DNA of 64,000 bases from Macrostomum lignano (taxonomy: Eukaryota). The position numbers and the translations under genes were made by a program. Of the stretch, positions 40,135-61,275 are shown piece after piece. A model generated the notes under the pieces. That model was not told the DNA's origin. It saw only the letters and a list, made by a program, of their open reading frames with translations, and searched no databases. The DNA lies in assembly GCA_002269645.1 (NCBI GenBank), contig NIVC01000990.1:186001-250000 (forward strand), given 5' to 3'. Position 1 is the stretch's first letter, and each line of letters starts with the position of its first letter.

Positions 40135-43100
40135 TTGAGAATCGCCCACAACCCCAACCCAGGAGAATCGCCCCCAACCCATGAGAATCACCCGCAACCC
40201 ATGAGAATCACCCCCAACCCAGGAGAATCGCCCCCAACCCAGGAGAATCGCTCCCAACCCAGGAGAATCGCCCCCAACCCATGAGAATCACCCCCAACCC
40301 AGGAGAATCGCCCCCAACCCAGGAGAATCGCCCCAACCCAGGAGAATCGCCCCCAACCCATGAGAATCACCCCAACCCAGGAGAATCGCCCCCAACCCAG
40401 GAGAATCGCCCCCAACCCATGAGAATCGCCCCCAAACCAGGAGAATCGCCCCCAACCCAGGAGAATCGCCCCCAACCCAGGAGAATCGCCCCCAACCCAG
40501 GAGAATAACCCCAACCCAGGAGAATCGCCCCCAACCCATGAGAATCGCCCCCAACCCAGGAGAATCGCCCCCATCCAGGAGAATCGCCCCCATCCAGGAG
40601 AATCGCCCCCATCCAGGAGAATCGCCCCCAACCCAGGAGAATCGCCCCCCAACCCAGGAGAATCGCCCCCCAACCCATGAGAATCGCCCCCAACCCAGGA
40701 GAATCGCCCCCAACCCAGGAGAATCGCCCCCATCCAGGAAAATCGCCTTTAACCCAGGAGAATCGCCTTTAACCCAGGAGAATCGCCCCCATCCAGGAGA
40801 ATCGCCTTTAACCCAGGAGAATCGCCCCCATCCAGGAGAATCGCCTTTAACCCAGGAGAATCGCCTCCATCCAGGAGAATCGCCTTTAACCCAGGAGAAT
40901 CGCCCCCAACCCAGGAGAATCGCCTTTAACCCAGGAGAATCGCCTTTAACCCAGGAGAATCGCCCCCAACCCAGGAGAATCGCCCCCAACCCATGAGAAT
41001 CGCCTTTAACCCAGGAGAATCGCCCCCAACCCAGGAGAATCACCCCCAACCCATGAGAATCGCCCCCAACCCAGGAGAATCGCCCCCAACCCAGGAGAAT
41101 CGCCCCCATTCAGGAGAATCGCCCCCATCCAGGAGAATCGCCCCCATCCAGGAGAATCGCCCCCATCCAGGAGAATCGCCCCCATCCAGGAGAATCGCCC
41201 CCATCCAGGAGAATCGCCCCCAACCCAGGAGAATCGCCCCCATTCAGGAGAATCGCCCCCATCCAGGAGAATCGCCCCCATCCAGGAGAATCGCCCCCAT
41301 CCAGGAGAATCGCCCCCATCCAGGAGAATCGCCCCCAACCCAGGAGAATCGCCCCCCAACCCAGGAGAATCGCCCCCCAACCCATGAGAATCGCCCCAAC
41401 CCAGGAGAATCGCCCCCATCCAGGAGAATCGCCTTTAACCCAGGAGAATCGCCCCCAACCCAGGAGAATCGCCCCCAACCCAGGAGAATCGCCCCCATCC
41501 AGGAGAATCGCCTTTAACCCAGGAGAATCGCCCCCAACCCAGGAGAATCGCCCCCAACCCAGAAGAATCACCCCTAACCCAGGAGAATCGCCCCCATCCA
41601 GGAGAATCGCCTTTAACCCAGGAGAATCGCCCCCCAACCCAGGAGAATCGCCCCCATCCAGGAGAATCGCCTTTAACCCAGGAGAATCGCCCCCAACCCA
41701 GGAGAATCGCCCCCAACCCAGGAGAATCGCCCCCATCCAGGAGAATCGCCTTTAACCCAGGAGAATCGCCCCCAACTCAGGAGAATCGCCCCCAACCCAG
41801 AAGAATCACCCCTAACCCAGGAGAATCGCCCCCATCCAGGAGAATCGCCTTTAACCCAGGAGAATCGCCCCCAACCCAGGAGAATCGCCCCCAACCCAGG
41901 AGAATCGCCCCCAACCAGGAGAATCGCCCCCATCCAGGAGAATCGCCCCCATCCAGGAGAATCGCCCCCATCCAGGAGAATCGCCCCCAACCCAGGAGAA
42001 TCGCCCCCAACCCAGGAGAATCGCCCCCAACCCATGAGAATCGCCCCCAAACCAGGAGAATCGCCCCCAACCCAGGAGAATCGCCCCCAACCCAGGAGAA
42101 TCGCTCCCAACCCAGGAGAATCGCCCCCAACCCAGGAGAATCGCCCCCAACCCAGGAGAATCGCCCCCAAACCAGGAGAATCGCCCCCAACCCAGGAGAA
42201 TCGCCCCCAACCCAGGAGAATCGTCCCCAACCAGGAGAATCGCCCCCAACCCAGGAGAATCGCTCCCAACCCAGGAGAATCGCCCCCAACCCAGGAGAAT
42301 CGCCCCCAACCCAGGAGAATCGCCCCCAACCCAGGAGAATCGCCCCCCAACCCATGAGAATCGCCCCCAACCCAGGAGAATCGTCCCCAACCCAGGAGAA
42401 TCGCCCCCATCCAGGAGAATCGCCCCCATCCAGGAGAATCGCCCCCATCCAGGAGAATCGCCCCCATCCAGGAGAATCGCCCCCAACCCAGGAGAATCGC
42501 CCCCCAACCAGGAGAATCGCCCCCCAACCCATGAGAATCGCCTTTAACCCAGGAGAATCGCTCCCAACCCAGGAGAATCGCCTTTAACCCAGGAGAATCG
42601 CCTTTAACCCAAGAGAATCGCCCCCAACCCATGAGAATCGCCTTTAACCCATGAGAATCGCCTTTAACCCAGGAGAATCGCCCCCAACCCATGAGAATCG
42701 CCTTTAACCCAGGAGAATCGCCCCCAACCCAGGAGAATCACCCCCAACCCATGAGAATCGCCCCCAACCCAGGAGAATCGCCCCCAACCCAGGAGAATCG
42801 CCCCCATCCAGGAGAATCGCCTTTAACCCAGGAGAATCGCCCCCAACCCAGGAGAATCGCCCCCAACCCAGGAGAATCGCCCCCATCCAGGAGAATCGCC
42901 CCCATCCAGGAGAATCGCCCCCATCCAGGAGAATCGCCCCCATCCAGGAGAATCGCCCCCAACCCAGGAGAATCGCCCCCAACCCAGGAGAATCGCCCCC
43001 ATCCAGGAAAATCGCCTTTAACCCAGGAGAATCGCCTTTAACCCAGGAGAATCGCCCCCCAACCCAGGAGAATCGCCTTTAACCCAGGAGAATCGCCCCC

Positions 43101-46100
43101 ATCCAGGAGAATCGCCTTTAACCCAGGAGAATCGCCCCCATCCAGGAGAATCGCCTTTAACCCAGGAGAATCGCCCCCAACCCAGGAGAATCGCCTTTAA
43201 CCCAGGAGAATCGCCTTTAACCCAGGAGAATCGCCCCCAACCCAGGAGAATCGCCCCCAACCCATGAGAATCGCCTTTAACCCAGGAGAATCGCCCCCAA
43301 CCCAGGAGAATCACCCCCAACCCATGAGAATCGCCCCCAACCCAGGAGAATCGCCCCCAACCCAGGAGAATCGCCCCCATTCAGGAGAATCGCCCCCATC
43401 CAGGAGAATCGCCCCCATCCAGGAGAATCGCCCCCATCCAGGAGAATCGCCCCCATCCAGGAGAATCGCCCCCAACCCAGGAGAATCGCCCCCATTCAGG
43501 AGAATCGCCCCCATCCAGGAGAATCGCCCCCATCCAGGAGAATCGCCCCCATCCAGGAGAATCGCCCCCATCCAGGAGAATCGCCTTTAACCCAGGAGAA
43601 TCGCCCCCAACCCAGGAGAATCGCCCCCAACCCAGGAGAATCGCCCCCATCCAGGAGAATCGCCTTTAACCCAGGAGAATCGCCCCCAACCCAGGAGAAT
43701 CGCCCCCAACCCAGAAGAATCACCCCTAACCCAGGAGAATCGCCCCCATCCAGGAGAATCGCCTTTAACCCAGGAGAATCGCCCCCAACCCAGGAGAATC
43801 GCCCCCATCCAGGAGAATCGCCTTTAACCCAGGAGAATCGCCCCCAACCCAGGAGAATCGCCCCCAACCCAGGAGAATCGCCCCCATCCAGGAGAATCGC
43901 CTTTAACCCAGGAGAATCGCCCCCAACTCAGGAGAATCGCCCCCAACCCAGAAGAATCACCCCTAACCCAGGAGAATCGCCCCCATCCAGGAGAATCGCC
44001 TTTAACCCAGGAGAATCGCCCCCCAACCCAGGAGAATCGCCCCCAACCCAGGAGAATCGCCCCCATCCAGGAGAATCGCCCCCATCCAGGAGAATCGCCC
44101 CCATCCAGGAGAATCGCCCCCATCCAGGAGAATCGCCCCCAACCCAGGAGAATCGCCCCCCAACCCAGGAGAATCGCCCCCAACCCATGAGAATCGCCCC
44201 CAAACCAGGAGAATCGCCCCCAACCCAGGAGAATCGCCCCCAACCCAGGAGAATCGCTCCCAACCCAGGAGAATCGCCCCCAACCCAGGAGAATCGCCCC
44301 CAACCCAGGAGAATCGCCCCCAAACCAGGAGAATCGCCCCCAACCCAGGAGAATCGCCCCCAACCCAGGAGAATCGTCCCCAACCCAGGAGAATCGCCCC
44401 CAACCCAGGAGAATCGCTCCCAACCCAGGAGAATCGCCCCCAACCCAGGAGAATCGCCCCCAACCCAGGAGAATCGCCCCCAACCCAGGAGAATCGCCCC
44501 CAACCCATGAGAATCGCCCCCAACCCAGGAGAATCGTCCCCAACCCAGGAGAATCGCCCCCATCCAGGAGAATCGCCCCCATCCAGGAGAATCGCCCCCA
44601 TCCAGGAGAATCGCCCCCATCCAGGAGAATCGCCCCCAACCCAGGAGAATCGCCCCCCAACCCAGGAGAATCGCCCCCCAACCCATGAGAATCGCCTTTA
44701 ACCCAGGAGAATCGCTCCCAACCCAGGAGAATCGCCTTTAACCCAGGAGAATCGCCTTTAACCCAAGAGAATCGCCCCCAACCCATGAGAATCGCCTTTA
44801 ACCCATGAGAATCGCCTTTAACCCAGGAGAATCGCCCCCAACCCATGAGAATCGCCTTTAACCCAGGAGAATCGCCCCCAACCCAGGAGAATCACCCCCA
44901 ACCCATGAGAATCGCCCCCAACCCAGGAGAATCGCCCCCAACCCAGGAGAATCGCCCCCATCCAGGAGAATCGCCTTTAACCCAGGAGAATCGCCCCCCA
45001 ACCCAGGAGAATCGCCCCCAACCCAGGAGAATCGCCCCCATCCAGGAGAATCGCCCCCATCCAGGAGAATCGCCCCCATCCAGGAGAATCGCCCCCATCC
45101 AGGAGAATCGCCCCCAACCCAGGAGAATCGCCCCCAACCCAGGAGAATCGCCCCCATCCAGGAAAATCGCCTTTAACCCAGGAGAATCGCCTTTAACCCA
45201 GGAGAATCGCCCCCATCCAGGAGAATCGCCTTTAACCCAGGAGAATCGCCCCCATCCAGGAGAATCGCCTTTAACCCAGGAGAATCGCCCCCATCCAGGA
45301 GAATCGCCTTTAACCCAGGAGAATCGCCCCCAACCCAGGAGAATCGCCTTTAACCCAGGAGAATCGCCTTTAACCCAGGAGAATCGCCCCCAACCCAGGA
45401 GAATCGCCCCCAACCCATGAGAATCGCCTTTAACCCAGGAGAATCGCCCCCAACCCAGGAGAATCACCCCCAACCCATGAGAATCGCCCCCAACCCAGGA
45501 GAATCGCCCCCAACCCAGGAGAATCGCCCCCATTCAGGAGAATCGCCCCCATCCAGGAGAATCGCCCCCATCCAGGAGAATCGCCCCCATCCAGGAGAAT
45601 CGCCCCCATCCAGGAGAATCGCCCCCAACCCAGGAGAATCGCCCCCATTCAGGAGAATCGCCCCCATCCAGGAGAATCGCCCCCATCCAGGAGAATCGCC
45701 CCCATCCAGGAGAATCGCCCCCATCCAGGAAAATCGCCCCCAACCCAGGAGAATCGCCCCCCAACCCAGGAGAATCGCCCCCAACCCATGAGAATCGCCC
45801 CCAACCCAGGAGAATCGCCCCCATCCAGGAGAATCGCCTTTAACCCAGGAGAATCGCCCCCAACCCAGGAGAATCGCCCCCAACCCAGGAGAATCGCCCC
45901 CATCCAGGAGAATCGCCTTTAACCAGGAGAATCGCCCCCAACCCAGGAGAATCGCCCCCATTCAGGAGAATCGCCCCCATCCAGGAGAATCGCCCCCATC
46001 CAGGAGAATCGCCCCCATCCAGGAGAATCGCCCCCAACCCAGGAGAATCGCCCCCAACCCAGGAGAATCGCCCCCAACCCATGAGAATCGCCCCCAACCC

Positions 46101-49100
46101 AGGAGAATCGCCCCCATCCAGGAGAATCGCCTTTAACCCAGGAGAATCGCCCCCAACCCAGGAGAATCGCCCCCAACCCAGGAGAATCGCCTTTAACCCA
46201 GGAGAATCGCCCCCAACCCAGGAGAATCGCCCCCAACCAGAAGAATCACCCCTAACCCAGGAGAATCGCCCCCATCCAGGAGAATCGCCTTTAACCCAGG
46301 AGAATCGCCCCCCAACCCAGGAGAATCGCCCCCATCCAGGAGAATCGCCTTTAACCCAGGAGAATCGCCCCCAACCCAGGAGAATCGCCCCCAACCAGGA
46401 GAATCGCCCCCATCCAGGAGAATCGCCTTTAACCCAGGAGAATCGCCCCCAACCCAGGAGAATCGCCCCCAACCCAGAAGAATCACCCCTAACCCAGGAG
46501 AATCGCCCCCATCCAGGAGAATCGCCTTTAACCCAGGAGAATCGCCCCCAACCCAGGAGAATCGCCCCCAACCAGGAGAATCGCCCCCATCCAGGAGAAT
46601 CGCCCCCATCCAGGAGAATCGCCCCCATCCAGGAGAATCGCCCCCATCCAGGAGAATCGCCCCCAACCCAGGAGAATCGCCCCCAACCCAGGAGAATCGC
46701 CCCCAACCAGGAGAATCGCCCCCAACCCAGGAGAATCGCCCCCAACCAGGAGAATCGCCCCAACCCAGGAGAATCGCCCCCAACCCAGGAGAATCGCCCC
46801 CAACCCAGGAGAATCGCCCCCAAGAATCCAGGAGAATCGCCCCCAACCCAGGAGAATCGCCCCCAACCCAGGAGAATCACCCCCAACCCAGGAGAATCGC
46901 CCCCATCCAGGAGAATCGCCCCCATCCAGGAGAATCGCCCCCATCCAGGAGAATCGCCCCCATCCAGGAGAATCGCCCCCAACCCAGGAGAATCGCCCCC
47001 AACCCAGGAGAATCGCCCCCAACCCATGAGAATCGCCTTTAACCAGGACAATCGCTCCCAACCCAGGAGAATCGCCTTTAACCCAGGAGAATCGCCTTTA
47101 ACCCAGAGAATCGCCCCCAACCCATGAGAATCGCCTTTAACCCATGAGAATCGCCTTTAACCCAGGAGAATCGCCCCCAACCCAGGAGAATCGCCTTTAA
47201 CCAGGAGAATCGCCCCCAACCAGGAGAATCACCCCCAACCATGAGAATCGCCCCCAACCCAGGAGAATCGCCCCCAACCCAGGAGAATCGCCCCCATCAG
47301 GAGAATCGCCCCCATCCAGGAGAATCGCCCCCATCCAGGAGAATCGCCCCCATCCAGGAGAATCGCCCCCATCCAGGAGAATCGCCCCCAACCCAGGAGA
47401 ATCGCCCCAACCCAGGAGAATCGCCCCCATCCAGGAGAATCGCCCCCATCCAGGAGAATCGCCCCCATCCAGGAGAATCGCCCCCAACCCAGAGAATCGC
47501 CCCTAACCCAGGAGAATCGCCCCCATCCAGGAGAATCGCCTTTAACCAGGAGAATCGCCCCCCAACCCATGAGAATCGCCCCCAACCAGGAGAATCGCCT
47601 TTAACCCAGGAGAATCGCCCCCAACCCAGGAGAATCGCCCCCAACCCAGGAGAATCGCCCCCATCCAGGAGAATCGCCTTTAACCCAGGAGAATCGCCCC
47701 CAGGAGAATCGCCAACCCAGGAGAATCGCCCCCAACCCAGGAGAATCGCCCCCAACCAGGAGAATCGCCCCCAACCCAGGAGAATCGCCCCCAACCCAGA
47801 GAATCGCCCCCAACCCAGGAGAATCGCCCCCATCCAGGAGAATCGCCTTTAACCCAGGAGAATCGCCCCCAACCCAGGAGAATCGCCCCCAACCCAGGAG
47901 AATCGCCCCTCCAGGAGAATCGCCCCCATCCAGGAGAATCGCCTCCAGGAGAATCGCCCCCATCCAGGAGAATCGCCCCCAACCCAGGAGAATCGCCCCC
48001 AACCCAGGAGAATCGCCCCCAACCAGGAGAATCGCCCCCAAACCAGGAGAATCGCCCCCAACCCAGGAGAATCGCCCCCAACCCAGGAGAATCGCCCCAA
48101 CCCAGGAGAATCGCCCCCAACCCAGGAGAATCGCCCCCAACCAGGAGAATCGCCCCCAACCAGGAGAATCGCCCCCAACCAGGAGAATCGCCCCCAACCC
48201 AGGAGAATCGCCCCCAACCCAGGAGAATCGCCCCCAACCAGGAGAATCGCCCCCAACCAGGAGAATCGCCCCCATCCAGGAGAATCGCCCCCATCCAGGA
48301 GAATCGCCCCCAACCCAGGAGAATCGCCCCCAACCCAGGAGAATCGCCCCCAACCCAGGAGAATCGCCCCCAACCCAGGAGAATCGCCCCCAACCAGGAG
48401 AATCGCCCCCAACCCAGGAGAATCGCCCCCAACCCAGGAGAATCGCCCCCATCCAGGAGAATCGCCCCAACCCAGGAGAATCGCCCCCAACCCAGGAGAA
48501 TCGCCCCCAACCCAGGAGAATCGCCCCTAACCCAGGAGAATCGCCCCCATCCAGGAGAATCGCCTTTAACCCAGGAGAATCGCCCCCCAACCCAGGAGAA
48601 TCGCCCCCAACCCAGGAGAATCGCCTTTAACCCAGGAGAATCGCCCCCAACCCAGGAGAATCGCCCCAACCCAGGAGAATCGCCCCCAACCAGGAGAATC
48701 GCCCCCAGGAGAATCGCCCCCAACCCAGGAGAATCGCCCCCAACCCAGGAGAATCGCCCCTAACCCAGGAGAATCGCCCCCATCCAGGAGAATCGCCTTT
48801 AACCCAGGAGAATCGCCCCCAACCCAGGAGAATCGCCCCCAACCCAGGAGAATCGCCCCCATCCAGGAGAATCGCCCCCATCCAGGAGAATCGCCCCCAT
48901 CCAGGAGAATCGCCCCCATCCAGGAGAATCGCCCCCAACCCAGGAGAATCGCCCCCAACCCAGGAGAATCGCCCCCATCCCAGGAGAATCGCCCCCAAAC
49001 CAGGAGAATCGCCCCCAACCAGGAGAATCGCCCCCAACCCAGGAGAATCGCCCCAACCCAGGAGAATCGCCCCCAACCAGGAGAATCGCCCCCAACCAGG

Positions 49101-52100
49101 AGAATCGCCCCCAACCAGGAGAATCGCCCCCAACCCAGGAGAATCGCCCCCAACCCAGGAGAATCGCCCCAACCCAGGAGAATCGCCCCCAACCAGGAGA
49201 ATCGCCCCCATCCAGGAGAATCGCCCCCATCCAGGAGAATCGCCCCCATCCAGGAGAATCGCCCCCAACCCAGGAGAATCGCCCCCAACCCAGGAGAATC
49301 GCCCCCAACCAGGAGAATCGCCCCCAACCCAGAGAATCGCCCCCATCCAGGAGAATCGCCCCAACCCAGGAGAATCGCCCCCAACCCAGGAGAATCGCCC
49401 CCAACCCAGGAGAATCGCCCCCAACCCAGGAGAATCGCCCCCATCCAGGAGAATCGCCTTTAACCCAGGAGAATCGCCCCCAACCCAGGAGAATCGCCCC
49501 CAACCCAGAAGAATCACCCCTAACCAGGAGAATCGATGGGAGATAGGAGAATCGCAACCAGGAGAATCGCCCCCAACCCAGGAGAATCGCCCCCGACCCA
49601 GGAGAATCGCCCCCATCCAGGAGAATCGCCTTTAACCCAGGAGAATCGCCCCCAACCCAGGAGAATCGCCCCCAACCAGGAGAATCGCCCCAAACCAGGA
49701 GAATCGCCCCCAACCCAGGAGAATCGCCCCCAACCCAGGAGAATCGTCCCCAACCCAGGAGAATCGCCCCCATCCAGGAGAATCGCCCCCATCCAGGAGA
49801 ATCGCCCCATCCAGGAGAATCGCCCCCATCCAGGAGAATCGCCCCCAACCCAGGAGAATCGCCCCCCAACCAGGAGAATCGCCCCCAACCATGAGAATCG
49901 CCTTTAACCCAGGACAATCGCTCCCAACCCAGGAGAATCGCCTTTAACCCAGGAGAATCGCCTTTAACCCAAGAGAATCGCCCCAACCCATGAGAATCGC
50001 CTTTAACCCATGAGAATCGCCTTTAACCCAGGAGAATCGCCCCCAACCCATGAGAATCGCCTTTAACCCAGGAGAATCGCCCCAACCCAGGAGAATCACC
50101 CCAACCCATGAGAATCGCTCCCAACCCAGGAGAATCGCCCCCAACCCAGGAGAATCGCCCCCATTCAGGAGAATCGCCCCATCCAGGAGAATCGCCCCCA
50201 TCCAGGAGAATCGCCCCCATCCAGGAGAATCGCCCCCATCCAGGAGAATCGCCCCCAACCCAGGAGAATCGCCCCCAACCCAGGAGAATCGCCCCCATCC
50301 AGGAGAATCGCCCCCATCCAGGAGAATCGCCCCCATCCAGGAGAATCGCCCCCATCCAGGAGAATCGCCCCCAACCCAGGAGAATCGCCCCCAACCCAGG
50401 AGAATCGCCCCCAACCCATGAGAATCGCCCCCAACCCAGGAGAATCGCCTTTAACCCAGGAGAATCGCCCCCAACCCAGGAGAATCGCCCCCAACCCAGG
50501 AGAATCGCCTTTAACCCAGGAGAATCGCCCCCAACCCAGGAGAATCGCCCCCAACCCAGGAGAATCGCCCCCAACCCAGAGAATCGCCTAACCCAGGAGA
50601 ATCGCCCCCAACCAGGAGAATCGCCCCCAACCCAGGAGAATCGCCCCCAACCCAGGAGAATCGCCCCCATCCAGGAGAATCGCCTTTAACCCAGGAGAAT
50701 CGCCCCCAAGAATCCCAGGAGAATCGCCCCCATCCAGGAGAATCGCCTTTAACCCAGGAGAATCGCCCCCAACCCAGGAGAATCGCCCCAACCCAGAGAA
50801 TCGCCCCCATCCAGGAGAATCGCCTTTAACCCAGGAGAATCGCCTTTAACCCAGGAGAATCGCCCCCAACCCAGGAGAATCGCCCCCAACCCAGGAGAAT
50901 CGCCCCCATCCAGGAGAATCGCCCCCATCCAGGAGAATCGCCCCCATCCAGGAGAATCGCCCCCATCCAGGAGAATCGCCCCCAACCCAGGAGAATCGCC
51001 CCCCAACCCAGGAGAATCGCCCCCAACCATGAGAATCGCCCCCAAACCAGGAGAATCGCCCCCAACCCAGGAGAATCGCCCCCAACCCAGGAGAATCGCT
51101 CCCAACCCAGGAGAATCGCCCCCAACCCAGGAGAATCGCCCCCAACCCAGGAGAATCGCCCCCAAACCAGGAGAATCGCCCCCAACCCAGGAGAATCGCC
51201 CCCAACCCAGGAGAATCGTCCCCAACCCAGGAGAATCGCCCCCATCCAGGAGAATCGCCCCCATCCAGGAGAATCGCCCCCATCCAGGAGAATCGCCCCC
51301 ATCCAGGAGAATCGCCCCCAACCCAGGAGAATCGCCCCCAACCCAGGAGAATCGCCCCCCAACCCATGAGAATCGCCCCCAACCCAGGAGAATCGCCTTT
51401 AACCCAGGAGAATCGCCCCCAACCCAGGAGAATCGCCCCCAACCCAGGAGAATCGCCCCCATCCAGGAGAATCGCCTTTAACCCAGGAGAATCGCCCCCA
51501 ACCCAGGAGAATCGCCCCCAACCCAGAAGAATCACCCCTAACCCAGGAGAATCGCCCCCATCCAGGAGAATCGCCTTTAACCCAGGAGAATCGCCCCCCA
51601 ACCCAGGAGAATCGCCCCCATCCAGGAGAATCGCCTTTAACCCAGGAGAATCGCCCCCAACCCAGGAGAATCGCCCCCAACCCAGGAGAATCGCCCCCAT
51701 CCAGGAGAATCGCCTTTAACCCAGGAGAATCGCCCCCAACCCAGGAGAATCGCCCCCAACCCAGAAGAATCACCCCTAACCCAGGAGAATCGCCCCCATC
51801 CAGGAGAATCGCCTTTAACCCAGGAGAATCGCCCCCCAACCCAGGAGAATCGCCCCCAACCCAGGAGAATCGCCCCCATCCAGGAGAATCGCCCCCATCC
51901 AGGAGAATCGCCCCCATCCAGGAGAATCGCCCCCATCCAGGAGAATCGCCCCCAACCCAGGAGAATCGCCCCCCAACCCAGGAGAATCGCCCCCCAACCC
52001 ATGAGAATCGCCCCCAAACCAGGAGAATCGCCCCCAACCCAGGAGAATCGCCCCCAACCCAGGAGAATCGCTCCCAACCCAGGAGAATCGCCCCCAACCC

Positions 52101-54497
52101 AGGAGAATCGCCCCCAACCCAGGAGAATCGCCCCCAAACCAGGAGAATCGCCCCCAACCCAGGAGAATCGCCCCCAACCCAGGAGAATCGTCCCCAACCC
52201 AGGAGAATCGCCCCCATCCAGGAGAATCGCCCCCATCCAGGAGAATCGCCCCCATCCAGGAGAATCGCCCCCATCCAGGAGAATCGCCCCCAACCCAGGA
52301 GAATCGCCCCCCAACCCAGGAGAATCGCCCCCCAACCCATGAGAATCGCCCCCAACCCAGGAGAATCGCCCCCATCCAGGAGAATCGCCTTTAACCCAGG
52401 AGAATCGCCCCCAACCCAGGAGAATCGCCCCCAACCCAGGAGAATCGCCCCCATCCAGGAGAATCGCCTTTAACCCAGGAGAATCGCCCCCAACCCAGGA
52501 GAATCGCCCCCAACCCAGAAGAATCACCCCTAACCCAGGAGAATCGATGGGAGATAGATTACCATCCAGGAGAATCGCCTTTAACCCAGGAGAATCGCCC
52601 CCCGACCCAGGAGAATCGCCCCCATCCAGGAGAATCGCCTTTAACCCAGGAGAATCGCCCCCAACCCAGGAGAATCGCCCCCAACCCAGGAGAATCGCCC
52701 CCATCCAGGAGAATCGCCTTTAACCCAGGAGAATCGCCCCCAACCCAGGAGAATCGCCCCCAACCCAGAAGAATCACCCCTAACCCAGGAGAATCGCCCC
52801 CATCCAGGAGAATCGCCTTTAACCCAGGAGAATCGCCCCCCAACCCAGGAGAATCGCCCCCAACCCAGGAGAATCGCCCCCATCCAGGAGAATCGCCCCC
52901 ATCCAGGAGAATCGCCCCCATCCAGGAGAATCGCCCCCATCCAGGAGAATCGCCCCCAACCCAGGAGAATCGCCCCCAACCCAGGAGAATCGCCCCCAAC
53001 CCATGAGAATCGCCCCCAAACCAGGAGAATCGCCCCCAACCCAGGAGAATCGCCCCCAACCCAGGAGAATCGCTCCCAACCCAGGAGAATCGCCCCCAAC
53101 CCAGGAGAATCGCCCCCAACCCAGGAGAATCGCCCCCAACCCAGGAGAATCGCCCCCAACCCAGGAGAATCGCCCCCAACCCAGGAGAATCGTCCCCAAC
53201 CCAGGAGAATCGCCCCCAACCCAGGAGAATCACCCCCAACCCATGAGAATCGCCCCCAACCCAGGAGAATCGCCTTTAACCCAGGAGAATCGCCCCCAAC
53301 CCAGGAGAATCGCCCCCATCCAGGAGAATCGCCCCCATCCAGGAGAATCGCCCCCATCCAGGAAAATCGCCTTTAACCCAGGAGAATCGCCCCCAACCCA
53401 GGAGAATCGCCCCCAACCCATGAGAATCGCCTTTAACCCAGGAGAATCGCCCCCAACCCAGGAGAATCACCCCCAACCCATGAGAATCGCCCCCAACCCA
53501 GGAGAATCGCCCCCAACCCAGGAGAATCGCCCCCATTCAGGAGAATCGCCCCCATCCAGGAGAATCGCCCCCATCCAGGAGAATCGCCCCCATCCAGGAG
53601 AATCGCCCCCAACCCAGGAGAATCGCCCCCAACCCAGGAGAATCGCCCCCAACCCATGAGAATCGCCCCCAACCCAGGAGAATCGCCCCCATCCAGGAGA
53701 ATCGCCTTTAACCCAGGAGAATCGCCCCCAACCCAGGAGAATCGCCCCCATCCAGGAGAATCGCCCCCATCCAGGAGAATCGCCCCCATCCAGGAAAATC
53801 GCCTTTAACCCAGGAGAATCGCCCCCATCCAGGAGAATCGCCCCCATTCAGGAGAATCGCCTTTAACCCAGAAGAATCGCCCCCATCCAGGAGAATCGCC
53901 TTTAACCCAGGAGAATCGCTCCCAACCCAGGAGAATCGCCTTTAACCCAGGAGAATCGCCTTTAACCCAGGAGAATCGCCCCCAACCCAGGAGAATCGCC
54001 TTTAACCCAGGAGAATCGCCTTTAACCCAGGAGAATCGCCCCCATCCAGGAGAATCGCCCCCATCCAGGAGAATCGCCCCCATCCAGGAGAATCGCCCCC
54101 ATCCAGGAGAATCGCCCCCCAACCCAGGAGAATCGCCCCCAACCCATGAGAATCGCCCCCAACCCAGGAGAATCGCCCCCATCCAGGAGAATCGCCCCCA
54201 ACCCAGGAGAATCGCCCCCATCCAGGAGAATCGCCCCCATCCAGGAGAATCGCCTTTAACCCAGGAGAATCGCCCCCATCCAGGAGAATCGCCTTTAACC
54301 CAGGAGAATCGCCCCCATCCAGGAGAATCGCCCCCATCCAGGAGAATCGCCCCCATCCAGGAAAATCGCCCCAACCCAGGAGAATCGCCCCCAACCCAGG
54401 AGAATCGCCCCCAACCCAGGAGAATCGCCCCCAACCCAGGAGAATCGCCCCTAACCCCAAGTCGGGAAAATCGTCCCCGAAAATCGCCCCTAACCCA
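40135..54497. repeat. 14.4-kb satellite of 19-20-bp units (AACCCAGGAGAATCGCCCCC and variants) with ~2.15-kb higher-order repeat
   Basis: About 730 units (length divided by unit size); rare variant units recur at about 2.15-kb spacing. Confidence 0.98.
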
Positions 54498-54552: not shown

Positions 54553-56287
54553 ATGACCTCAACCGACTTAGCCAACAAGCCGGTCCAATTAAACGGCACT
54601 TCAAAAGACGCCGCTGATAAAACATCAAAGGATGCCGCCGCTGTCCCAGAAAATAAAGCTAATAATTGCGATGAGGCGCAGCAGCAGGAGGCTGAGTTCT
54701 ACACTGATGCGGAGCGCTACTGGGCCACCGTGGAGGCCACCGAGGCTGGCATGATGGGCGGCAACGACAGCCTCGATGAGATCGAAATCTCTTCATCACG
54801 GATGTTCCTGACCAGAGCTGCCGAGCTGGCCGGGCTGAGGCAGCTCAACCGGGCTCTGGATTGCGGCTCTGGCATCGGCCGGGTGACTAAGAAGCTCCTG
54901 CTGCCGATGTTTGCCACGGTTGACATGGCCGAGGTGACGAGCCACTTCCTGGCCAAGTCCAGGGAGTACATTGGGGAGCCAGATGCCTCCCGGGTGGGGC
55001 GACAGTTCTACTGCGGCCTGCAGGTGAGCGGGATAACCGGGTTTTGATGGGGAAGATTTGGGATTTTTGATGATTTGGGATTTTTGATGATTTGAGATTT
55101 TTGATGGCGAATATTTGGGATTTTTGATGGCGAAGATTTGGGTTTTTTGATGGCGAAGATTTGGGATTTTTGATGGCGAAGATTTGGGATTTTTGATGGC
55201 GAAGATTTGGGTTTTTTGATGGCGAAGATTTGGGATTTTTGATGGCGAAGATTTGGGATTTTTGATGGCGAAGATTTGGGATTTTTGATGATTTGGGATT
55301 TTTTATGATTTGGGATTTTTGATGATTTGGGTTTTTTGATGGCGAAGATTTGGGATTTTTTATGGCGAAGATTTGGGATTTTTTATTAGGAAGATTTTGG
55401 ATTTTTGATGGCGAAGATTTGGGATTTTTGATGGGAAGATTTGATTTGTTTATGTCGAGGATTTGGGATTTTTATGAGATTTTTTAGATTTTTTTGATAG
55501 TGGAGATTAAGGATTTTTCCATAAGGAAAATTTGGGATTATTTGCTGGGGGAGATTTGGGATTTTTTATGGAAATATTTGGGATTTTTATATCCTGGCAA
55601 ATTAGAAATGTTTCGATGAAGATGATTTGAGATTTTTGATTGCGAGATTATAAAATTTTTGTTGAGAAGATTTTGGGTTTATGTACGAGTGAGTAAAAGA
55701 TTGAACTCGTCGATGGGAAGTAAGATCGTGGGATATTTGGTGGAATTTCTAAAGAGCGGCTATAAGAAACTTTGATGATGGTTGAAGGTAGGTTTGAATA
55801 GACATATATCAACCAGTCACTTGATAATTTCGAAGATTTCCTAATTTATAAACGCAAAATTATTTTATTGCTACTCTTAGTAGAATAAATTGAAAATGCA
55901 TGGAACGAAATAAATTAAACTCTATTAATTAATTATCCGCAGGACCTGACATTCCCAGCCGAGACCCGCTACGACCTGGTCTGGGTCCAGTGGGTCATCG
56001 GCCATCTGCGCGACGCTCATCTGGTGGACTTTCTGCGCCGAGCCGCCGCCTCGCTCAGCCCCTGCGGCATGATCGGCGTCAAGGACAATGTCATCACCGC
56101 CCGGGACGACTCCGAGTACGACTTTGACGAGCAGGACAGCAGCGTCTGCCGGCCGCGGCGCTCCCTGCTGAACCTGTTCAACCAGGCCGGCCTGATCGTC
56201 CTGCTGGAGGAGACTCAGGAGGGCTTCCCGGATGCCCTGTACCCGGTGCTGTCCTTCGCTCTGGTGCCCAAGGGCCGCTGCGTTTGA
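54553..56287 (+). CDS. NTMT1: N-terminal Xaa-Pro-Lys N-methyltransferase (NTMT1/Tae1 family); join(54553..55023,55943..56287), 271 aa
   Basis: FYTDAERYW, GMMGG, SAM-binding ALDCGSGIGRVTKKLLLP, YDLVWVQWVIGHL, VKDNV, DEQDSSVCR, YPVLSFAL; phase-0 GT-AG intron. Confidence 0.93.
55045..55480. repeat. ~24-bp minisatellite GATTTGGGATTTTTGATGGCGAA in the NTMT1 intron
   Basis: Tandem array decaying toward the 3' side. Confidence 0.88.
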
Positions 56288-56600: not shown

Positions 56601-56969
56601 TCTGTCTGTCTGTCTGTCTTTATCTATCCCTGTTTATCTGTTCTATATTTGTTCTCCTAAATATACTCGTATAAATGCACTGCGTGTTACAAGCTCATCT
56701 TGTTCCTTGATTGCTTACCTTAATGTAAGTTTTTATGTAATGCATTTCGTTCTGTTTGCGCTGTCGTTTTAGCGCTGAAGGCAGTGACTTTGTTTACGCA
56801 ACTTCCTCTCTTAGTTTTTGTTTGTTACTTCTTTCTGATCTCTATAACGTATTTATCAGAGGAGCCCATAAATTATTAAAGAATTCCCTATTATAACTTG
56901 CCGCAAGCCTTCATGCAGTAACAACCTCTTTAAGGATCGCCACCCACCAATCACAAACCTTTCCAAAAC

Positions 56970-57392
56970 TACAAACCAATCAGAAACCATCCTATAAACC
57001 GCCAACCAATCAGAAACCATCCTATAAACCGCCAGCCAATCAGAAACCATCCTATAAACCGCCAACCAATCAGAAACCATCCTATAAACCGCCAACCAAT
57101 CAGAAACCATTCTATAAACCGCCAACCAATCAGAAACCATTCTATAAACCGCCAACCAATCAGAAACCATCTTAAAAATCGCCAACCAATCAGAAACCGT
57201 CCTATGAACCGCCAACCAATTAGAAACTGTTAAATGAACCGTCAACAAATCCGAAATCGTTCTATGAACTGCCAACCAATCAGAAACCATCCTATAAACC
57301 GCCAGCAAATCAGAAACCGTCAACCAATCAAAAACCGTCCTGAGAAGCGCCAAACAATCAGAAACCTCCCTTTAGACCGCCAACCAATCAAA
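56970..57392. repeat. 30-bp minisatellite AAACCGCCAACCAATCAGAAACCATCCTAT upstream of the PCS-like gene
   Basis: Tandem array; each unit contains CCAATCAG. Confidence 0.88.
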
Positions 57393-57454
57393 AACAATCT
57401 ACCTGGTAAAATTTGTCATCCAATCGGCAGCCACTTGAGAAAATCTCTCATTTC

Positions 57455-58388
57455 ATGTCATCCGACCGCTTGCTGGTGACCTTTCTGGACAGCGACGAAG
57501 GCCGACGCCGCCTCTTGGAAGCGTCGCCAATTCGTCCTGCCACGGTTGAAGGATTCTGCAAGAAGCTGCGCTGCGCCAGCTGCGGCATGGCCTCGATTTC
57601 GCTGGTGATGCGGGCGCAGACTGGGGATCAGGTGACCTATGCTGAAGACTTCATCTACGACAGGTTTGTTTGTACGAAAAATGCAGATAACCGGACGTAA
57701 TCAAACTGCAGATAACCGGAAGTAATAAAAATGTAGATAACCGGAAGTAATCAAAAATGCAGATAACCAGAAGTAATCAAACTAGATTACCGGAAGTAAT
57801 CAAACTGTAGATTACCGGAAGTAATCAAACTGCAGATAACTGGAAGTAATAAAAATGTAGATAACCGGAAGTAATAAAAAAAGTAGATAACCGGAAGTAA
57901 TAAAAATGTAGATAACTGGAAGTAATAAAAATGTAGATAACTGGAAGTAATAAAAAAGTAGATAACCGGAAGTTAATCAAATCTCAATTCCCAGACTCTC
58001 CGACATCAAACCACTGGCTGATTTGGATCAGCGCGGCATGACAGCCGACGATGTGGCCGCCTGCCTGCTGCGTCTCGGCGCCGCCTCCTCGGTGCGGCGT
58101 CCTGGCAGCGCCGACGAGCTCCGCGATCTGGCTCTGACTCGCCTGGCTCAAGAGTCATCGTCTATCATTGCCAATTTCCATCTGAAAAGCTTGGGCTTTC
58201 CCTCCGAATGGGGTCACCTGTCCCCTGTGGCAGCCTACCATCGCGACTCAGACAGTCTGCTCATAATGGACAATGACCCCAAGCCTAACGACCCCTTCTG
58301 GGTCACCGTGCAGGACCTCTACGAATCGATGCGGCCAGCGGACCCGGAATCTGGACTGCCCAGAGGACTCATTTTGGCGGAGTTTTAA
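57455..58388 (+). CDS. Phytochelatin-synthase-like papain-fold enzyme, catalytic domain only; join(57455..57663,57995..58388), 200 aa
   Basis: LDSDEGRRRLLEA; SCGMAS (Cys codon 57581); GHLSPVAAY (His codon 58215); LIMD (Asp codon 58269, His+18 as in PCS); WV..DLYESM...D.ESGLPRGL; phase-2 GT-AG intron. Confidence 0.85.
57680..57975. repeat. ~25-bp minisatellite GATAACCGGAAGTAATAAAAATGTA filling the PCS-like intron
   Basis: Tandem array. Confidence 0.88.
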
Positions 58389-58739: not shown

Positions 58740-59880
58740 TATATGGGTGAGATTCGGAACCAATTATCTCATGTGTGAGATTTGGAAAACCCCAAATGTG
58801 AGATTCGAAACCAATAATCTCATGGGTGAGATTCGGAACTAATATTGTTGTTCCGGTTGCGAATCTGCGAATACGGTTGCGAATCTCACTCATCTCATCT
58901 CATGGGTGACTTTTGGAACCAATTATCTCGTCTCACGGGTGAGATTCGGAACCAATTATCTCATCTGATGGGTGAGATTCGGAACCAATTATCTCTCATG
59001 GGTGAGATTCGGAACCAATTATCTCATCTGATGGGTGAGATTCGGAACCAATTATCTCTGATGGGTGAGATTCGGAACCAATTATCTCATCTCATGGGTG
59101 ACTTTCGGAACCAATTATCTCATCTCATGGGTGACTTTCGGAACCAATTATCTCGTCTCACGGGTGAGATTCGGAACCAATTATCTCATCTGATGGGTGA
59201 GATTCGGAACCAATTATCTCTCATGGGTGAGATTCGGAACCAATTATCTCATCTGATGGGTGAGATTCGGAACCAATTATCTCTCATGGGTGAGATTCGG
59301 AACCAATTATCTCATCTGATGGGTGAGATTCGGAACCAATTATCTCTGATGGGTGAGATTCGGAACCAATTATCTCATCTCATGGGTGAGATTCGGAACC
59401 AATTATCTCATCTCATGGGTGACTTTCGGAACCAATTATCTCGTCTCACGGGTGAGATTCGGAACCAATTATCTCATCTGATGGGTGAGATTCGGAACCA
59501 ATTATCTCTCATGGGTGAGATTCGGAACCAATTATCTCATCTGATGGGTGAGATTCGGAACCAATTATCTCTGATGGGTGAGATTCGGAACCAATTATCT
59601 CATCTCATGGGTGACTTTCGGAACCAATTATCTCGTCTCACGGGTGAGATTCGGAACCAATTATCTCTGATGGGTGAGATTCGGAACCAATTATCTCATC
59701 TCATAGGTGAGATTCGGAACCAATTATCTCTGATGGGTGAGATTCTGAACCAATTATCTCATCTCACAGGTGAGATTCGGAACCAATTATCTCACCTCAT
59801 ACATGTAGGTGACATTCGGAACTAATTATATTAAATTATCTCATCTCGTAGGTGACATTCTGAAATAATTATCTCATCTC
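58740..59880. repeat. 28-33-bp minisatellite GGGTGAGATTCGGAACCAATTATCTC(ATCT)
   Basis: Tandem array between the PCS-like and stomatin genes. Confidence 0.94.
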
Positions 59881-60087: not shown

Positions 60088-61275
60088 ATGTCGAAATCAA
60101 GCAAGTCGCTAAGTGCCAAGGCGAAGCAGCAGCAGCAGCTTCAGCAGGAGGACCGCGGCTCCACCTCCACGGGCACCGAGGATGACGAAGGAGAGGATGG
60201 CAATGAAGGTCGCCGTCAGAAGTCGGAGTCCCGCAAGCGGCTGCAGCGGTCGTTTTCGCTGGTTCCGGAGCGACTTGCCGTCGGCGGCAAAGGAGGCGGC
60301 GGCAGCGGCGGCGGGCTGTTCAGGAAGTCCGCCAGCCGGATGCAGCTGTGCGAGGCCGTCCTGCAGGTGCTCATCGTTGGCCTGGTGGTGGCAACCTTCC
60401 CGTTCTCGCTGCTGCTGTGCCTGAAGGTGGTGGCCCAGTACGAGCGGGCGGTGATCTTCCGTCTGGGCCGCATCCGCAGCTCCGAGGCCAGCGGGCCCGG
60501 CATGATCTTCCTGCTGCCCGGCATCGACTCCATGAAGCTGGTGGACCTGCGCACCATGACATTCGACGTGCCCACCCAGGAGGTGCTGACTAAAGACTCT
60601 GTGACCGTGGCGGTTGAGGCCGTGGTGTACTACAGGATCTTCGACCCGGTCATGTCGGTTGTCAACGTCGAGGACTGCAGCCGCTCCACGAAGCTGCTCG
60701 CCCAGACAACACTGCGCAACGTCCTTGGCACGGCCAGTCTCTACCAGCTGCTGGCCGGCCGGGACGAATCCACCCTGCTGATGCAGGAGACTCTGGACGC
60801 CGCCACCGACACATGGGGCGTCAAGGTGGAGCGAGTGGAGATCAAGGATGTCCGCCTGCCGACTCAGCTGCAGCGGGCGATGGCCGCCGAGGCGGAGGCG
60901 GCCCGCGAGGCCCGGGCGAAGGTGATCGCGGCCGAGGGCGAGCAGAAGGCCAGCAAAGCGTTGAAGGCGGCCGCCATCGAGCTGTCCGAGTGCGGAGTCG
61001 CCCTGCAGCTGCGCTACCTGCAGACTCTGTGCAGCATCTCGGCTGAGAAGAACTCAACAATCATCTTCCCGCTGCCCATCGAGATGCTGCAGATGTTCCA
61101 GACCGAGCAGCAGCAGCCGCCGCCGCAGTCCACCGATGATTCTGACGCCACGGCACCGACTTCCTGTGCCAGGCCGGTGATCACCACCAGCCGGAAGTCG
61201 ACGACGCATCCGCAGACCCAGCAGCAGATGGGAGCTGCTTCCGGTGCGAGCAGCAGCTTGGAGTCCGGCTGCTGA
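60088..61275 (+). CDS. STOM: Stomatin/MEC-2-family SPFH protein, intronless, 395 aa
   Basis: Pro-kinked hydrophobic hairpin VVATFPFSLLLCLKVVAQYERAVIFRLGR; VDLRT..FDVPTQEVLTKDSVTVAV; LLAQTTLRNVLG; AEAEAAREARAKVIAAEGE; ALQLRYLQTL; STIIFPLP. The exact paralog is not resolved. Confidence 0.93.
   Translation: MSKSSKSLSAKAKQQQQLQQEDRGSTSTGTEDDEGEDGNEGRRQKSESRKRLQRSFSLVPERLAVGGKGGGGSGGGLFRKSASRMQLCEAVLQVLIVGLVVATFPFSLLLCLKVVAQYERAVIFRLGRIRSSEASGPGMIFLLPGIDSMKLVDLRTMTFDVPTQEVLTKDSVTVAVEAVVYYRIFDPVMSVVNVEDCSRSTKLLAQTTLRNVLGTASLYQLLAGRDESTLLMQETLDAATDTWGVKVERVEIKDVRLPTQLQRAMAAEAEAAREARAKVIAAEGEQKASKALKAAAIELSECGVALQLRYLQTLCSISAEKNSTIIFPLPIEMLQMFQTEQQQPPPQSTDDSDATAPTSCARPVITTSRKSTTHPQTQQQMGAASGASSSLESGC

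Follow-up and report, generated by a model that had tools for sequence, protein, structure and literature searches.

The presence of a phytochelatin synthase (PCS) gene in an animal is usually taken as a sign of phytochelatin-based metal detoxification. A PCS-like gene in the flatworm Macrostomum lignano raises the question of whether that reading holds for every member of the family: its product keeps the catalytic triad, although residues on which phytochelatin synthesis depends have gone. The gene lies in a window of 64,000 nucleotides (contig NIVC01000990.1 of assembly GCA_002269645.1, positions 186,001 to 250,000 of the forward strand), and coordinates given here are positions within that stretch. 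A first-pass annotation, made from the sequence, had described a short gene of prokaryotic type with a spliceosomal intron and an altered active site, and had suggested either horizontal acquisition or a deep paralog. We consider below what kind of enzyme is encoded and where the gene might have come from.

Gene structure, copies and start codon

The gene is real, consists of two coding exons and is already catalogued in M. lignano. Its features are summarized in Table 1. Joining the exons across a GT..AG intron gives 603 nt, that is, 200 codons and a TAA stop, just as the first-pass annotation had read it, and the 57663/57995 junction is also present in the transcript-guided NCBI models. It is this published transcript-guided annotation that indirectly supports the statement that the gene is transcribed. 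Apart from the initial Met, which it lacks, PAA73849.1 has the sequence of the window protein, and the existing UniProt model, A0A1I8J0D7, has been given the automatic name glutathione gamma-glutamylcysteinyltransferase. The product had also been said to comprise the catalytic domain only. This holds: the protein ends six residues past a conserved R-G, positions 38-209 of the 210 in the Pfam profile are covered, and the NCBI models share the stop codon. Those transcript-guided models contain no further 3' exons for a C-terminal domain, and the next open reading frame downstream is a stomatin-like gene that is unrelated to the PCS-like gene.

Table 1. Features of the PCS-like gene of M. lignano (window positions)
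Feature	Position	Strand	Remarks
Exon 1	57455..57663	+	209 nt; codons 1-69 plus 2 nt; N-terminal helix, Lys36-Lys37, catalytic Cys43
ATG start codon as written in the assembly	57455..57457	+	annotated CDS/transcript begins at 57458
Lys36-Lys37 codons	57560-57565	+	Lys37 = 57563-57565
Cys43 codon	57581-57583	+	catalytic nucleophile
Intron	57664..57994	+	331 nt, phase 2, GT..AG; starts GTTTGT, finishes CCCAG
Exon 2	57995..58388	+	394 nt; Leu133, Phe138, His144, Asp162, NDPKPND, Asp186/Arg193/Gly194, TAA
His144 codon	58215-58217	+	triad residue
Asp162 codon	58269-58271	+	triad residue
TAA stop	58386-58388	+	end of exon 2
AATAAA	58523..58528	+	135 nt 3' of the stop; candidate polyadenylation signal, from sequence reading

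The PCS-like gene is found at three loci in M. lignano, which are homeologous or allelic. At all three, the open reading frame, both splice sites, the Cys-His-Asp triad and the residues Asp186, Arg193 and Gly194 are intact. The other two loci use the same donor and acceptor, with introns of 381 and 1681 nt; in the window copy, the interior of the intron (57677-57981) is a 25-nt unit repeated 12 times in tandem. The GC content of the coding sequence and its GC3 are like those of the neighbouring host genes. Contamination from the diatoms on which the animals feed was considered and rejected, given the flanking host genes, scaffolds of 127-391 kb and the occurrence at three loci.

The start codon deserves separate comment. 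The NCBI models are 199 residues long, are flagged 'partial' and, at three of the three loci, begin with TCATCC right behind the ATG. In M. lignano the spliced leader ends in ...TTGCATG, and it is joined at acceptors of the form [TC]TNCAG (PMC8629364). Older, ML2-derived UniProt models read HFQ-SSDRL at this point, and back-translation from the protein gives catttcCAG followed directly by tcatcc. The Mlig_3_7 assembly was polished using RNA-seq reads (PMC5730564). Position 57458 is probably a spliced-leader trans-splice acceptor, and the ATG written in the genome may be a product of the polishing, with the AUG of the mRNA supplied by the spliced leader.

Family membership and fold

The match of the protein to the phytochelatin synthase family is far above chance. 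The Pfam profile PF05023 (Phytochelatin) is matched with 79.4 bits (E 2.9e-22; cut-off 24.9), and the best sequence match in the PDB is NsPCS, the Alr0975 protein of Nostoc sp. PCC 7120 (E about 4e-14); a search of NCBIfam with the 200-aa protein returned no match. A structure predicted for the 200-aa protein by AlphaFold2 (pLDDT 93.9, pTM 0.91) was superposed by Foldseek on NsPCS (2BU3, 6THO) with a TM score of 0.88-0.90 and an rmsd of 2.0-2.9 Å, the next-best fold matches being other papain-like peptidases. The profile search and the superposition had both been proposed as checks by the first-pass annotation, and both gave the expected family and fold. The protein is a single-domain papain-fold cysteine enzyme of the PF05023 family. 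It has no N-terminal leader: the maximum hydropathy over 12 residues is 0.6, whereas it is at least 2.0 in 67% of the NsPCS-like proteins (group B below).

Active-site residues

Residues were tabulated for about 150 homologous domains, divided into canonical PCS (group A), NsPCS-like proteins (group B) and short eukaryotic proteins (group C), the last being delimited from motifs in this analysis. The triad, Cys43, His144 and Asp162, aligns with Cys70, His183 and Asp201 of NsPCS, with a spacing of 18 from His to Asp, and it is conserved at 100% in all three groups except for the His in group B, at 98%. Asp186, Arg193 and Gly194 are conserved in groups A, B and C and in the M. lignano protein; the first two correspond to Asp225 and Arg232 of NsPCS, which we take to bind the acyl substrate by its gamma-glutamyl end.

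Other parts of the active site have changed. Six residues before Cys43, at a position occupied by the oxyanion-hole Gln in NsPCS and every canonical PCS, the M. lignano protein has Lys37. Gln is found there in 100, 91 and 100% of groups A, B and C, respectively, and none of the roughly 150 homologues besides the M. lignano protein has undergone the change to Lys. Following Asp162 comes NDPKPNDPFW, where NsPCS reads VSRYKYPPVW and canonical PCS read VARFKYPPHW. Leu133 occupies the position of Arg152 in AtPCS1, where Arg is present in 100% of group A, 91% of group B and 5% of group C (Met 70% and Leu 18% in the latter). One residue, Glu141, is inserted before Gly-His, and 96-97% of groups A and B are without this insertion. 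In AtPCS1 terms, the remaining equivalences are Gln50 to Lys37, Glu52 to Arg39, Tyr55 to Ser42 and Gln157 to Phe138, with a Pro/Asp/Asn-rich loop standing in for Phe184-Lys185-Tyr186.

The consequences of such changes can be judged from mutagenesis. AtPCS1 carrying Q50A/N, R152A/K, K185A/R, Q157A/N, F184A or Y186A is inactive or nearly so, and the cavity of NsPCS is lined by Gln64, Arg173, Lys206 and Tyr207 (PMC3855540). All four of the NsPCS residues are replaced here (Gln64 by Lys37, Arg173 by Leu133, Lys206 and Tyr207 by the Pro/Asn/Asp loop), and they are kept in 91, 91, 69 and 75% of group B. The first-pass annotation was right in reading Lys for the oxyanion-hole Gln and NDPKPND for the R-[FY]-K-Y motif, and the motifs that it had given, HISPLAAY..LIMD for NsPCS and HFSPIGGY..LILD for eukaryotic PCS, agree with the alignments. 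Its more general claim of an altered active site is borne out, which argues against ordinary phytochelatin synthesis.

It could be supposed that these changes reflect relaxed constraint, such that the protein is a relic or pseudoenzyme, still expressed but catalytically disabled, and the loss of the oxyanion Gln is a part of its decay. The singularity of Lys37, together with the loss of activity in the Q50A/N variants of AtPCS1 (PMC3855540), is consistent with this, as are the long branch and the low score of the protein within its best group (see below). The three copies differ at five nonsynonymous and two synonymous sites, which would fit a protein on the way to losing its function; however, these seven substitutions are too few for selection, purifying selection included, to be estimated as dN/dS, and the amino-acid changes are conservative (A/V, A/S, L/V, V/M) with none at the active site. 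The very confident structural model and the intactness of reading frame, splice sites, triad and Asp186/Arg193/Gly194 at three loci also argue against decay, which we regard as unlikely.

Relationships to other PCS-like proteins

Profile HMMs of the three groups gave scores for the M. lignano protein of 94.3 bits (canonical), 123.4 bits (NsPCS-like) and 131.7 bits (short eukaryotic), a margin for the last of 8 bits over NsPCS-like and 37 bits over canonical; the protein is, even so, the lowest scorer in this best group. Approximate maximum-likelihood (ML) placement assigned a likelihood weight of 0.51 inside group C and a further 0.28 to edges of mixed composition just outside a group-C subclade; the stem of the canonical clade received 0.20, and positions within group B 0.008. 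Bootstrapping of the placement gave group C in 34 of 60 replicates (57%) and group B in 11 of 60, and the neighbour-joining (NJ) bootstrap for placement in group C was about 50%. An NJ tree of 154 dereplicated domains set the query beside two long-branch sequences at the midpoint root, an arrangement judged to be long-branch attraction. No ML placement falls within the canonical clade, in keeping with the earlier claim that the protein lies outside canonical animal PCS. Taken together, the sequence comparisons moderately favour the short, leaderless eukaryotic group C as the best fit.

The named members of group C include a Strongylocentrotus purpuratus protein, XP_003730583.1 (219 aa), protist transcripts from MMETSP, Saccoglossus kowalevskii LOC100368764 and LOC100369208, and proteins of Hydra vulgaris and Clytia hemisphaerica. 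Among the sequences representing the canonical and NsPCS-like groups, P0023 is from Rhodosorus marinus. The genes of Saccoglossus and Hydra and three metagenomic, eukaryote-like members are single-exon. Because of this, a test of vertical descent by intron position could not be applied, and the single-exon genes of other animals leave some room for an old transfer into or between eukaryotes. A gene passed to the Macrostomum lineage by a different eukaryote, such as an algal or protist food organism, and not inherited vertically from an animal ancestor, would accord with the patchy distribution of group C across animals and with the failure to find any relative of more than 40% identity outside M. 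lignano. The stretches HLSPVAAYH.DSDS.LI.D and DPE.GLPRGL are closest to protist-type sequences (P0016, P0019, P0020), and ML placement puts weight on the stem of a protist-type subclade. However, other placements join the M. lignano protein to sea-urchin-type sequences (P0036, P0043, P0112), no member shares more than about 30-37% identity with it, the composition is host-like, and such a transfer is indistinguishable from differential loss with fast evolution; we consider it rather doubtful.

The prokaryotic identity of group B rests on a scan of prokaryotic genomes, one for each of 185,579 species, with two peptide patterns derived from a five-sequence alignment. The best tblastn identity to the M. 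lignano protein among these was 30-35%, and the two-pattern scan yielded no prokaryotic relative above that level, whereas a recent transfer would predict a close one. All 11 of the top prokaryotic matches with readable motifs keep the Gln, the Arg152 equivalent and [YH]-K-Y-P-P, and are without the loop insertion. With these features, and with no leader on the M. lignano protein, the label 'prokaryote-type' is not supported; as to the two origins proposed by the first-pass annotation, a deep paralog fits better and horizontal acquisition is without support. It is improbable that the flatworm lineage gained a bacterial NsPCS-type gene, later fitted with an intron, whose product would act as NsPCS does, releasing gamma-Glu-Cys from glutathione by hydrolysis and synthesising PC2 weakly: the single catalytic domain, the PDB match to NsPCS, the closeness of the NsPCS-like HMM score, the 11 bootstraps in group B, a sole intron that is nearly all tandem repeat and the seemingly intron-poor family (Hydra and Saccoglossus relatives being intronless) are outweighed by prokaryotic relatives no nearer than the eukaryotic short forms, by the motifs that those relatives keep and the cavity residues all replaced here, by the missing leader, by the minimal likelihood weight inside group B, by host-like GC and GC3, and by three homeologous or allelic loci amid host genes.

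Proposed function

The explanation that we favour, with a probability of about 0.55, is that this is a transcribed and probably spliced-leader trans-spliced gene for a leaderless PCS-fold cysteine hydrolase of the short eukaryotic group, the protein being a fast-evolving member of that group and not a recent bacterial import. Because the oxyanion-hole and acceptor-cavity residues essential in AtPCS1 are gone and the triad is kept, we infer hydrolysis rather than transfer; judged by these residues, the most likely function would be that of a cytosolic cysteine hydrolase and not a phytochelatin polymerase. The mRNA would be trans-spliced at 57458, possibly receiving its AUG from the leader, and the product, which has no leader at its N-terminus, would presumably be cytosolic. 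With Cys43, His144 and Asp162 in place, a thioester with the substrate could still be formed, and its resolution by hydrolysis, instead of passage to a second glutathione, would make the enzyme a peptidase or amidase. Candidate substrates are glutathione, a glutathione conjugate, and other gamma-glutamyl compounds or small amides. Lys37 might act as an electrostatic stand-in for the oxyanion Gln, or might be a change that lowers activity.

A broader proposal can be put forward only tentatively. Animals and protists may have in common a clade, so far uncharacterised, of half-size cytosolic cysteine enzymes with the PCS fold, in which the acceptor site for the second glutathione has been lost and which have a role other than phytochelatin synthesis, such as deglycination of glutathione conjugates, turnover of gamma-glutamyl peptides, or removal of thiol or isopeptide modifications. 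The Lys of the M. lignano protein, in place of an otherwise invariant Gln, would then imply that the chemistry of the transition state has changed or that the substrate is new.

Significance

The database name glutathione gamma-glutamylcysteinyltransferase is probably wrong for the M. lignano protein and for its sea-urchin, acorn-worm and hydrozoan relatives, because the residues that mutagenesis has defined as needed for phytochelatin synthesis are missing, with the triad and the Asp/Arg pair kept. Should these proteins constitute a distinct hydrolase family, they would add a new piece to the glutathione and thiol-peptide metabolism of invertebrates and protists, and would call for caution in ecotoxicology surveys based on counts of PCS homologues. 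For M. lignano itself the practical yield is modest: one mis-named gene, with a start codon that was possibly written in by RNA-seq polishing.

Comparison with known systems

One point of reference is NsPCS (PDB 2BTW, 2BU3, 6TH5, 6THO), a 'primitive' half-size PCS. Each of the two proteins consists of one catalytic domain of some 200 residues, and they have in common the fold (TM 0.88-0.90), the triad spacing, the motifs H-x-S-P-x-A-A-Y and L-I-M-D, and a C-terminal D...R-G. They are, however, only 25% identical; in addition to the substitutions in the cavity, the M. lignano protein carries the one-residue insertion ahead of Gly-His and three deletions past the Cys helix, and its gene is eukaryotic and spliced, encoding a product without an N-terminal leader. 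The canonical enzymes (EC 2.3.2.15), such as AtPCS1, C. elegans PCS-1 and Schistosoma mansoni PCS, belong to the same Pfam family and have the same triad. In contrast to them, the M. lignano protein is without the C-terminal Cys-rich metal-sensing domain and without the Q50/E52/Y55/R152/Q157/F184/K185/Y186 set of AtPCS1.

Group C, whose Hydra vulgaris and Clytia hemisphaerica proteins also carry the automatic name, provides the closest comparison, although identity to its members is only 25-37%. The M. lignano protein differs from the group in Lys37, where the group has invariant Gln, and in NDPKPND, which takes the place of the group's [VT]-W-P-x-T-E/P motif after the catalytic Asp; its gene has one intron, in contrast to the single-exon genes mentioned above. 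At the Gln157 position it has Phe, and 36% of group C have Tyr or Phe. What it shares with the group is as follows: a leaderless protein of 200-270 residues comprising only the catalytic domain and lacking R-[FY]-K-Y, Met or Leu for Arg152, the one-residue insertion before Gly-His, a Lys preceding the oxyanion position and an N-[YF]-H-[ML] strand.

Gene structure, copies and existing annotation

The two coding exons of the PCS-like gene (PCS, phytochelatin synthase) together make 603 nt, that is 200 codons and TAA, and the sole intron consists almost wholly of a 25-nt tandem repeat. A tblastn search of the window found no second copy there. The product matches the Pfam family PF05023 (Phytochelatin; 79.4 bits, E 2.9e-22) as far as profile position 209/210, and thus stops straight after the catalytic domain; the next ORF downstream is stomatin-like and holds no PCS C-terminal domain. 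The closest solved structure by sequence is that of the Nostoc half-size enzyme NsPCS/Alr0975 (E ~4e-14). An AlphaFold2 model built with 41 homologues (mean pLDDT 93.9, pTM 0.91) superposes on NsPCS structures with TM 0.88-0.90, after which the best structural matches are other papain-like peptidases (TM <=0.64). The observation in the first-pass annotation is confirmed in all its elements: a Cys-His-Asp triad (Cys43/His144/Asp162) with a His-to-Asp spacing of 18, a lysine (Lys37) in place of the glutamine expected six residues before the cysteine, NDPKPND instead of [VS]-[AS]-R-[FY]-K-Y, and an end straight after the catalytic domain.

Features of the window and of paralogous M. lignano loci (L-numbers)
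Feature	Position	Strand	Remarks
20-nt-unit array (CCCCAACCCAGGAGAATCGC)	40152-54457		about 728 copies, 14.3 kb
NTMT-like N-terminal methyltransferase gene	54553-56287	+	upstream neighbour; Pfam Methyltransf_PK at paralogous loci
23-nt tandem repeat	55042-55588		fills intron of NTMT-like gene
30-nt-unit tandem array	56946-57395		about 12.5 copies; upstream of PCS-like gene
Leader-like bases 5' of CDS	57440-57460; L001 4985-5000; L007 and L008 1476-1500		sequence match to spliced leader
Exon 1, PCS-like gene	57455..57663	+	209 nt, coding
Intron, PCS-like gene	between 57663 and 57995	+	331 nt; starts GTTTGT, ends CCCAG
25-nt tandem repeat	57677-57981		12 copies; inside intron of PCS-like gene
Exon 2, PCS-like gene	57995..58388	+	394 nt, coding, ends TAA
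33-nt-unit tandem array	58892-59880		about 28 copies; downstream of PCS-like gene
Stomatin/SPFH-like ORF	60088..61275	+	395 aa, own ATG; next ORF downstream
Tandem-repeat intron at other loci	L001 about 5222-5575; also L007		

Close database proteins come from M. lignano only. PAA73849.1 (BOX15_Mlig028197g2, 199 aa, 'partial') is identical apart from lacking the initial Met, and its locus on NIVC01000990.1 agrees with the window; UniProt A0A1I8J0D7 is the same protein, named automatically as a glutathione gamma-glutamylcysteinyltransferase. The gene is already in public databases, probably under a misleading name. The gene occurs at two more loci of the same assembly (Mlig_3_7), on NIVC01001902.1 and NIVC01000765.1, again with an NTMT-like Methyltransf_PK gene as its upstream neighbour. 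The intron measures 331 (window), 381 and 1681 nt at the three loci, with identical splice sites and non-repeat bases. Selection is unmeasurable from these copies because the substitutions are too few: five nonsynonymous (A23V, A78S, S101A, L158V, V175M) and two synonymous. RNA-seq and a transcriptome assembled de novo were the basis of the Mlig_3_7 gene models (PMC5730564), which lends indirect transcript support to the 57663/57995 junction and to the stop.

The NTMT-like, PCS-like and stomatin-like genes share one orientation, so that co-transcription is possible. An older UniProt model, P0010 (447 aa), joins PCS-like exon 1 to the stomatin-like ORF, whose presence downstream explains the chimera; the older models P0002 and P0003 likewise concern the stomatin-like gene, frameshifted fragments of which are misnamed 'Inositol-pentakisphosphate 2-kinase' and 'EF-hand domain-containing protein'. 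The fusion and the misnaming are evidently artefacts, produced by annotating an error-prone assembly. Amongst the surrounding repeats, the 33-nt array gives rise to a spurious 326-aa ORF (58845..59825), and the 20-nt-unit array, with a GC content of about 0.6, is strongly asymmetric between strands (GC skew -0.35, AT skew +0.5); the paralogous locus L001 has a related array at its start.

Start codon and proposed trans-splicing

At all three loci the NCBI CDS, flagged partial, starts at the TCA right after the genomic ATG. In M. lignano the spliced leader (SL) reads CGGTCTCTTACTGCGAAGACTCAATTTATTGCATG, and trans-splicing uses the acceptor motif [TC]TNCAG (PMC8629364). The bases directly 5' of TCATCC are ATTTCATG at two Mlig_3_7 loci and ATTGCATG at one, the latter identical over eight bases to the leader's 3' end. 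At the CDS start, two models of the older ML2 assembly have HFQ-SSDRL; HFQ, back-translated here rather than read from the DNA itself, would be a consensus acceptor (catttcCAG|tcatcc). Mlig_3_7 was assembled from the PacBio data of the ML2 authors (Wasik et al.) and polished using Pilon with RNA-seq as well as DNA reads (PMC5730564, PMC8629364). We infer SL trans-splicing of the mRNA at 57458, with the leader supplying the AUG; the genomic 'ATG' may owe its presence to RNA-seq reads that contained the leader. Because RNA-seq reads were used in polishing, start codons at trans-splice sites in Mlig_3_7 may be artefacts. The protein sequence is the same whether the AUG is genomic or leader-derived.

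Relatives and placement of the flatworm protein

HMMER, run exhaustively against 1.84 billion cluster representatives, returned 1612 matches at E <=1e-3, with no relative above about 40% identity outside M. lignano. Motif inspection of the best 150 of the 1612 separated three groups. Group A comprises the canonical long PCS (T-Q-x-E-P-A-F-C-G-L ... H-F-S-P-I-G-G-Y ... D-V-A-R-F-K-Y-P-P-H-W). Group B is NsPCS-like (about 230-260 aa; H-I-S-P-I-A-A-Y ... D-[VT]-A-x-Y-K-Y-P-P-V-W), two thirds of it with a hydrophobic N-terminal leader. Group C is leaderless (200-270 aa), with K-Q-x-G-x-x-x-C-G, N-Y-H-M, a loop one residue longer before G-H, and D-[VT]-W-P-x-T-E-x-W replacing R-[FY]-K-Y; its members include Strongylocentrotus purpuratus XP_003730583.1, MMETSP protist transcripts, two Saccoglossus kowalevskii genes, Hydra vulgaris and Clytia hemisphaerica. 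Group C genes on long contigs are single-exon and lie in gene-poor, eukaryote-like DNA.

Some metagenomic proteins (P0011, P0012, P0014) carry two PCS-like domains in tandem. The first domain of P0011 has lost the catalytic Cys (GG for CG), has Asn for Asp, and its post-Asp loop, VAPPKPQPLW, resembles the flatworm NDPKPNDPFW. For the protein P0040 (locus L005, 8001-8768), the database version translates an in-frame TGA, three codons from the end, as Trp; this looks like a genetic-code artefact of the gene caller, and the true product is probably 252 aa.

Against group profile HMMs built without it, the flatworm protein scores 94.3 (A), 123.4 (B) and 131.7 (C) bits. A per-position residue table of about 150 domains shows two states that it shares with group C and that are nearly absent elsewhere: Met/Leu at the position of AtPCS1 Arg152 (100% of A and 91% of B have Arg there) and an extra residue before Gly-His (where 96-97% of A and B have a gap). 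It also resembles C, more weakly, in Lys36, His132, Phe138, the Cys at residue 43, an acidic residue three positions ahead of the invariant Trp and the lack of a leader. The trees are weaker evidence. Neighbour joining (NJ) on a C-rich set nests the protein in C in about half of bootstraps. An approximate maximum-likelihood placement (BLOSUM62-derived rate matrix, four gamma categories, fixed NJ backbone) puts a weight of 0.51 inside C, 0.28 on mixed-composition edges just outside a group C subclade, 0.20 on the stem edge of A and 0.008 inside B, with bootstraps of 34/60 for C, 11/60 for B and 9/60 for A. The protein lies firmly outside canonical PCS. Most likely it belongs to group C and evolves fast, a placement without strong statistical support.

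It had been proposed that the gene was of prokaryotic type and horizontally acquired, or else a deep paralogue, possibly of altered specificity. The former is unsupported. A pattern scan of one genome from each of 185,579 prokaryotic species found group-B-type proteins only (Myxococcota, Pseudomonadota, Chlamydiae, Legionellales, Rickettsiales and one archaeal MAG), with identities of 23-42% in the segment that matched best and of at most about 35% near full length; the placement weight inside B is minimal, and GC (0.60) and GC3 (0.70) of the CDS are similar to those of adjoining host genes. That the protein is non-canonical is supported, and it is plausibly a deep paralogue whose specificity has changed.

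Active site and likely function

Mutagenesis of AtPCS1 showed Gln50, Glu52, Tyr55, Arg152, Gln157, Phe184, Lys185 and Tyr186 each to be required for phytochelatin synthesis; Gln50 forms the oxyanion hole (papain Gln19, NsPCS Gln64), and Gln50, Arg152, Lys185 and Tyr186 line a proposed second-substrate cavity (NsPCS Gln64, Arg173, Lys206, Tyr207) (PMC3855540). In the alignment and residue table the flatworm protein retains none of this set; the corresponding residues are Lys37, Arg39, Ser42, Leu133, Phe138 and a Pro/Asp/Asn loop. It keeps the triad and Asp186/Arg193/Gly194, which are conserved throughout the three groups. Asp186 and Arg193 correspond to NsPCS Asp225 and Arg232, which in the acyl-enzyme structure are reported to hold the gamma-glutamyl moiety by its free amino and carboxylate groups. 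The acyl-donor half of the active site would thus survive and the acceptor half would be gone, from which acyl-enzyme formation followed by hydrolysis would be expected; these residues predict a cytosolic peptidase or amidase, and no polymerase. Group C as a whole has lost the equivalents of Arg152, Lys185 and Tyr186 and kept the Gln. Amongst the approximately 150 domains, Lys at the oxyanion-Gln position occurs in the M. lignano protein only, in every copy. Lys37 may supply positive charge to the oxyanion or belong to functional decay, and the data favour neither.

Comparison with known phytochelatin synthases

Our literature search, of limited coverage, found no publication connecting phytochelatin synthase and Macrostomum, nor any account of a leaderless group, in animals and protists, that lacks the acceptor-site residues; with such coverage, absence is no proof of novelty. 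Half-size 'PCS-like' forms are described from eukaryotic algae and cyanobacteria, horizontal transfer sometimes being invoked (PMC11314372), and animal PCS homologues are treated as putative phytochelatin synthases (PMC3838358). New here are the Gln-to-Lys change, unique to the M. lignano protein, and the argument, made at the level of residues, that this protein and the group it most resembles would not be phytochelatin synthases.
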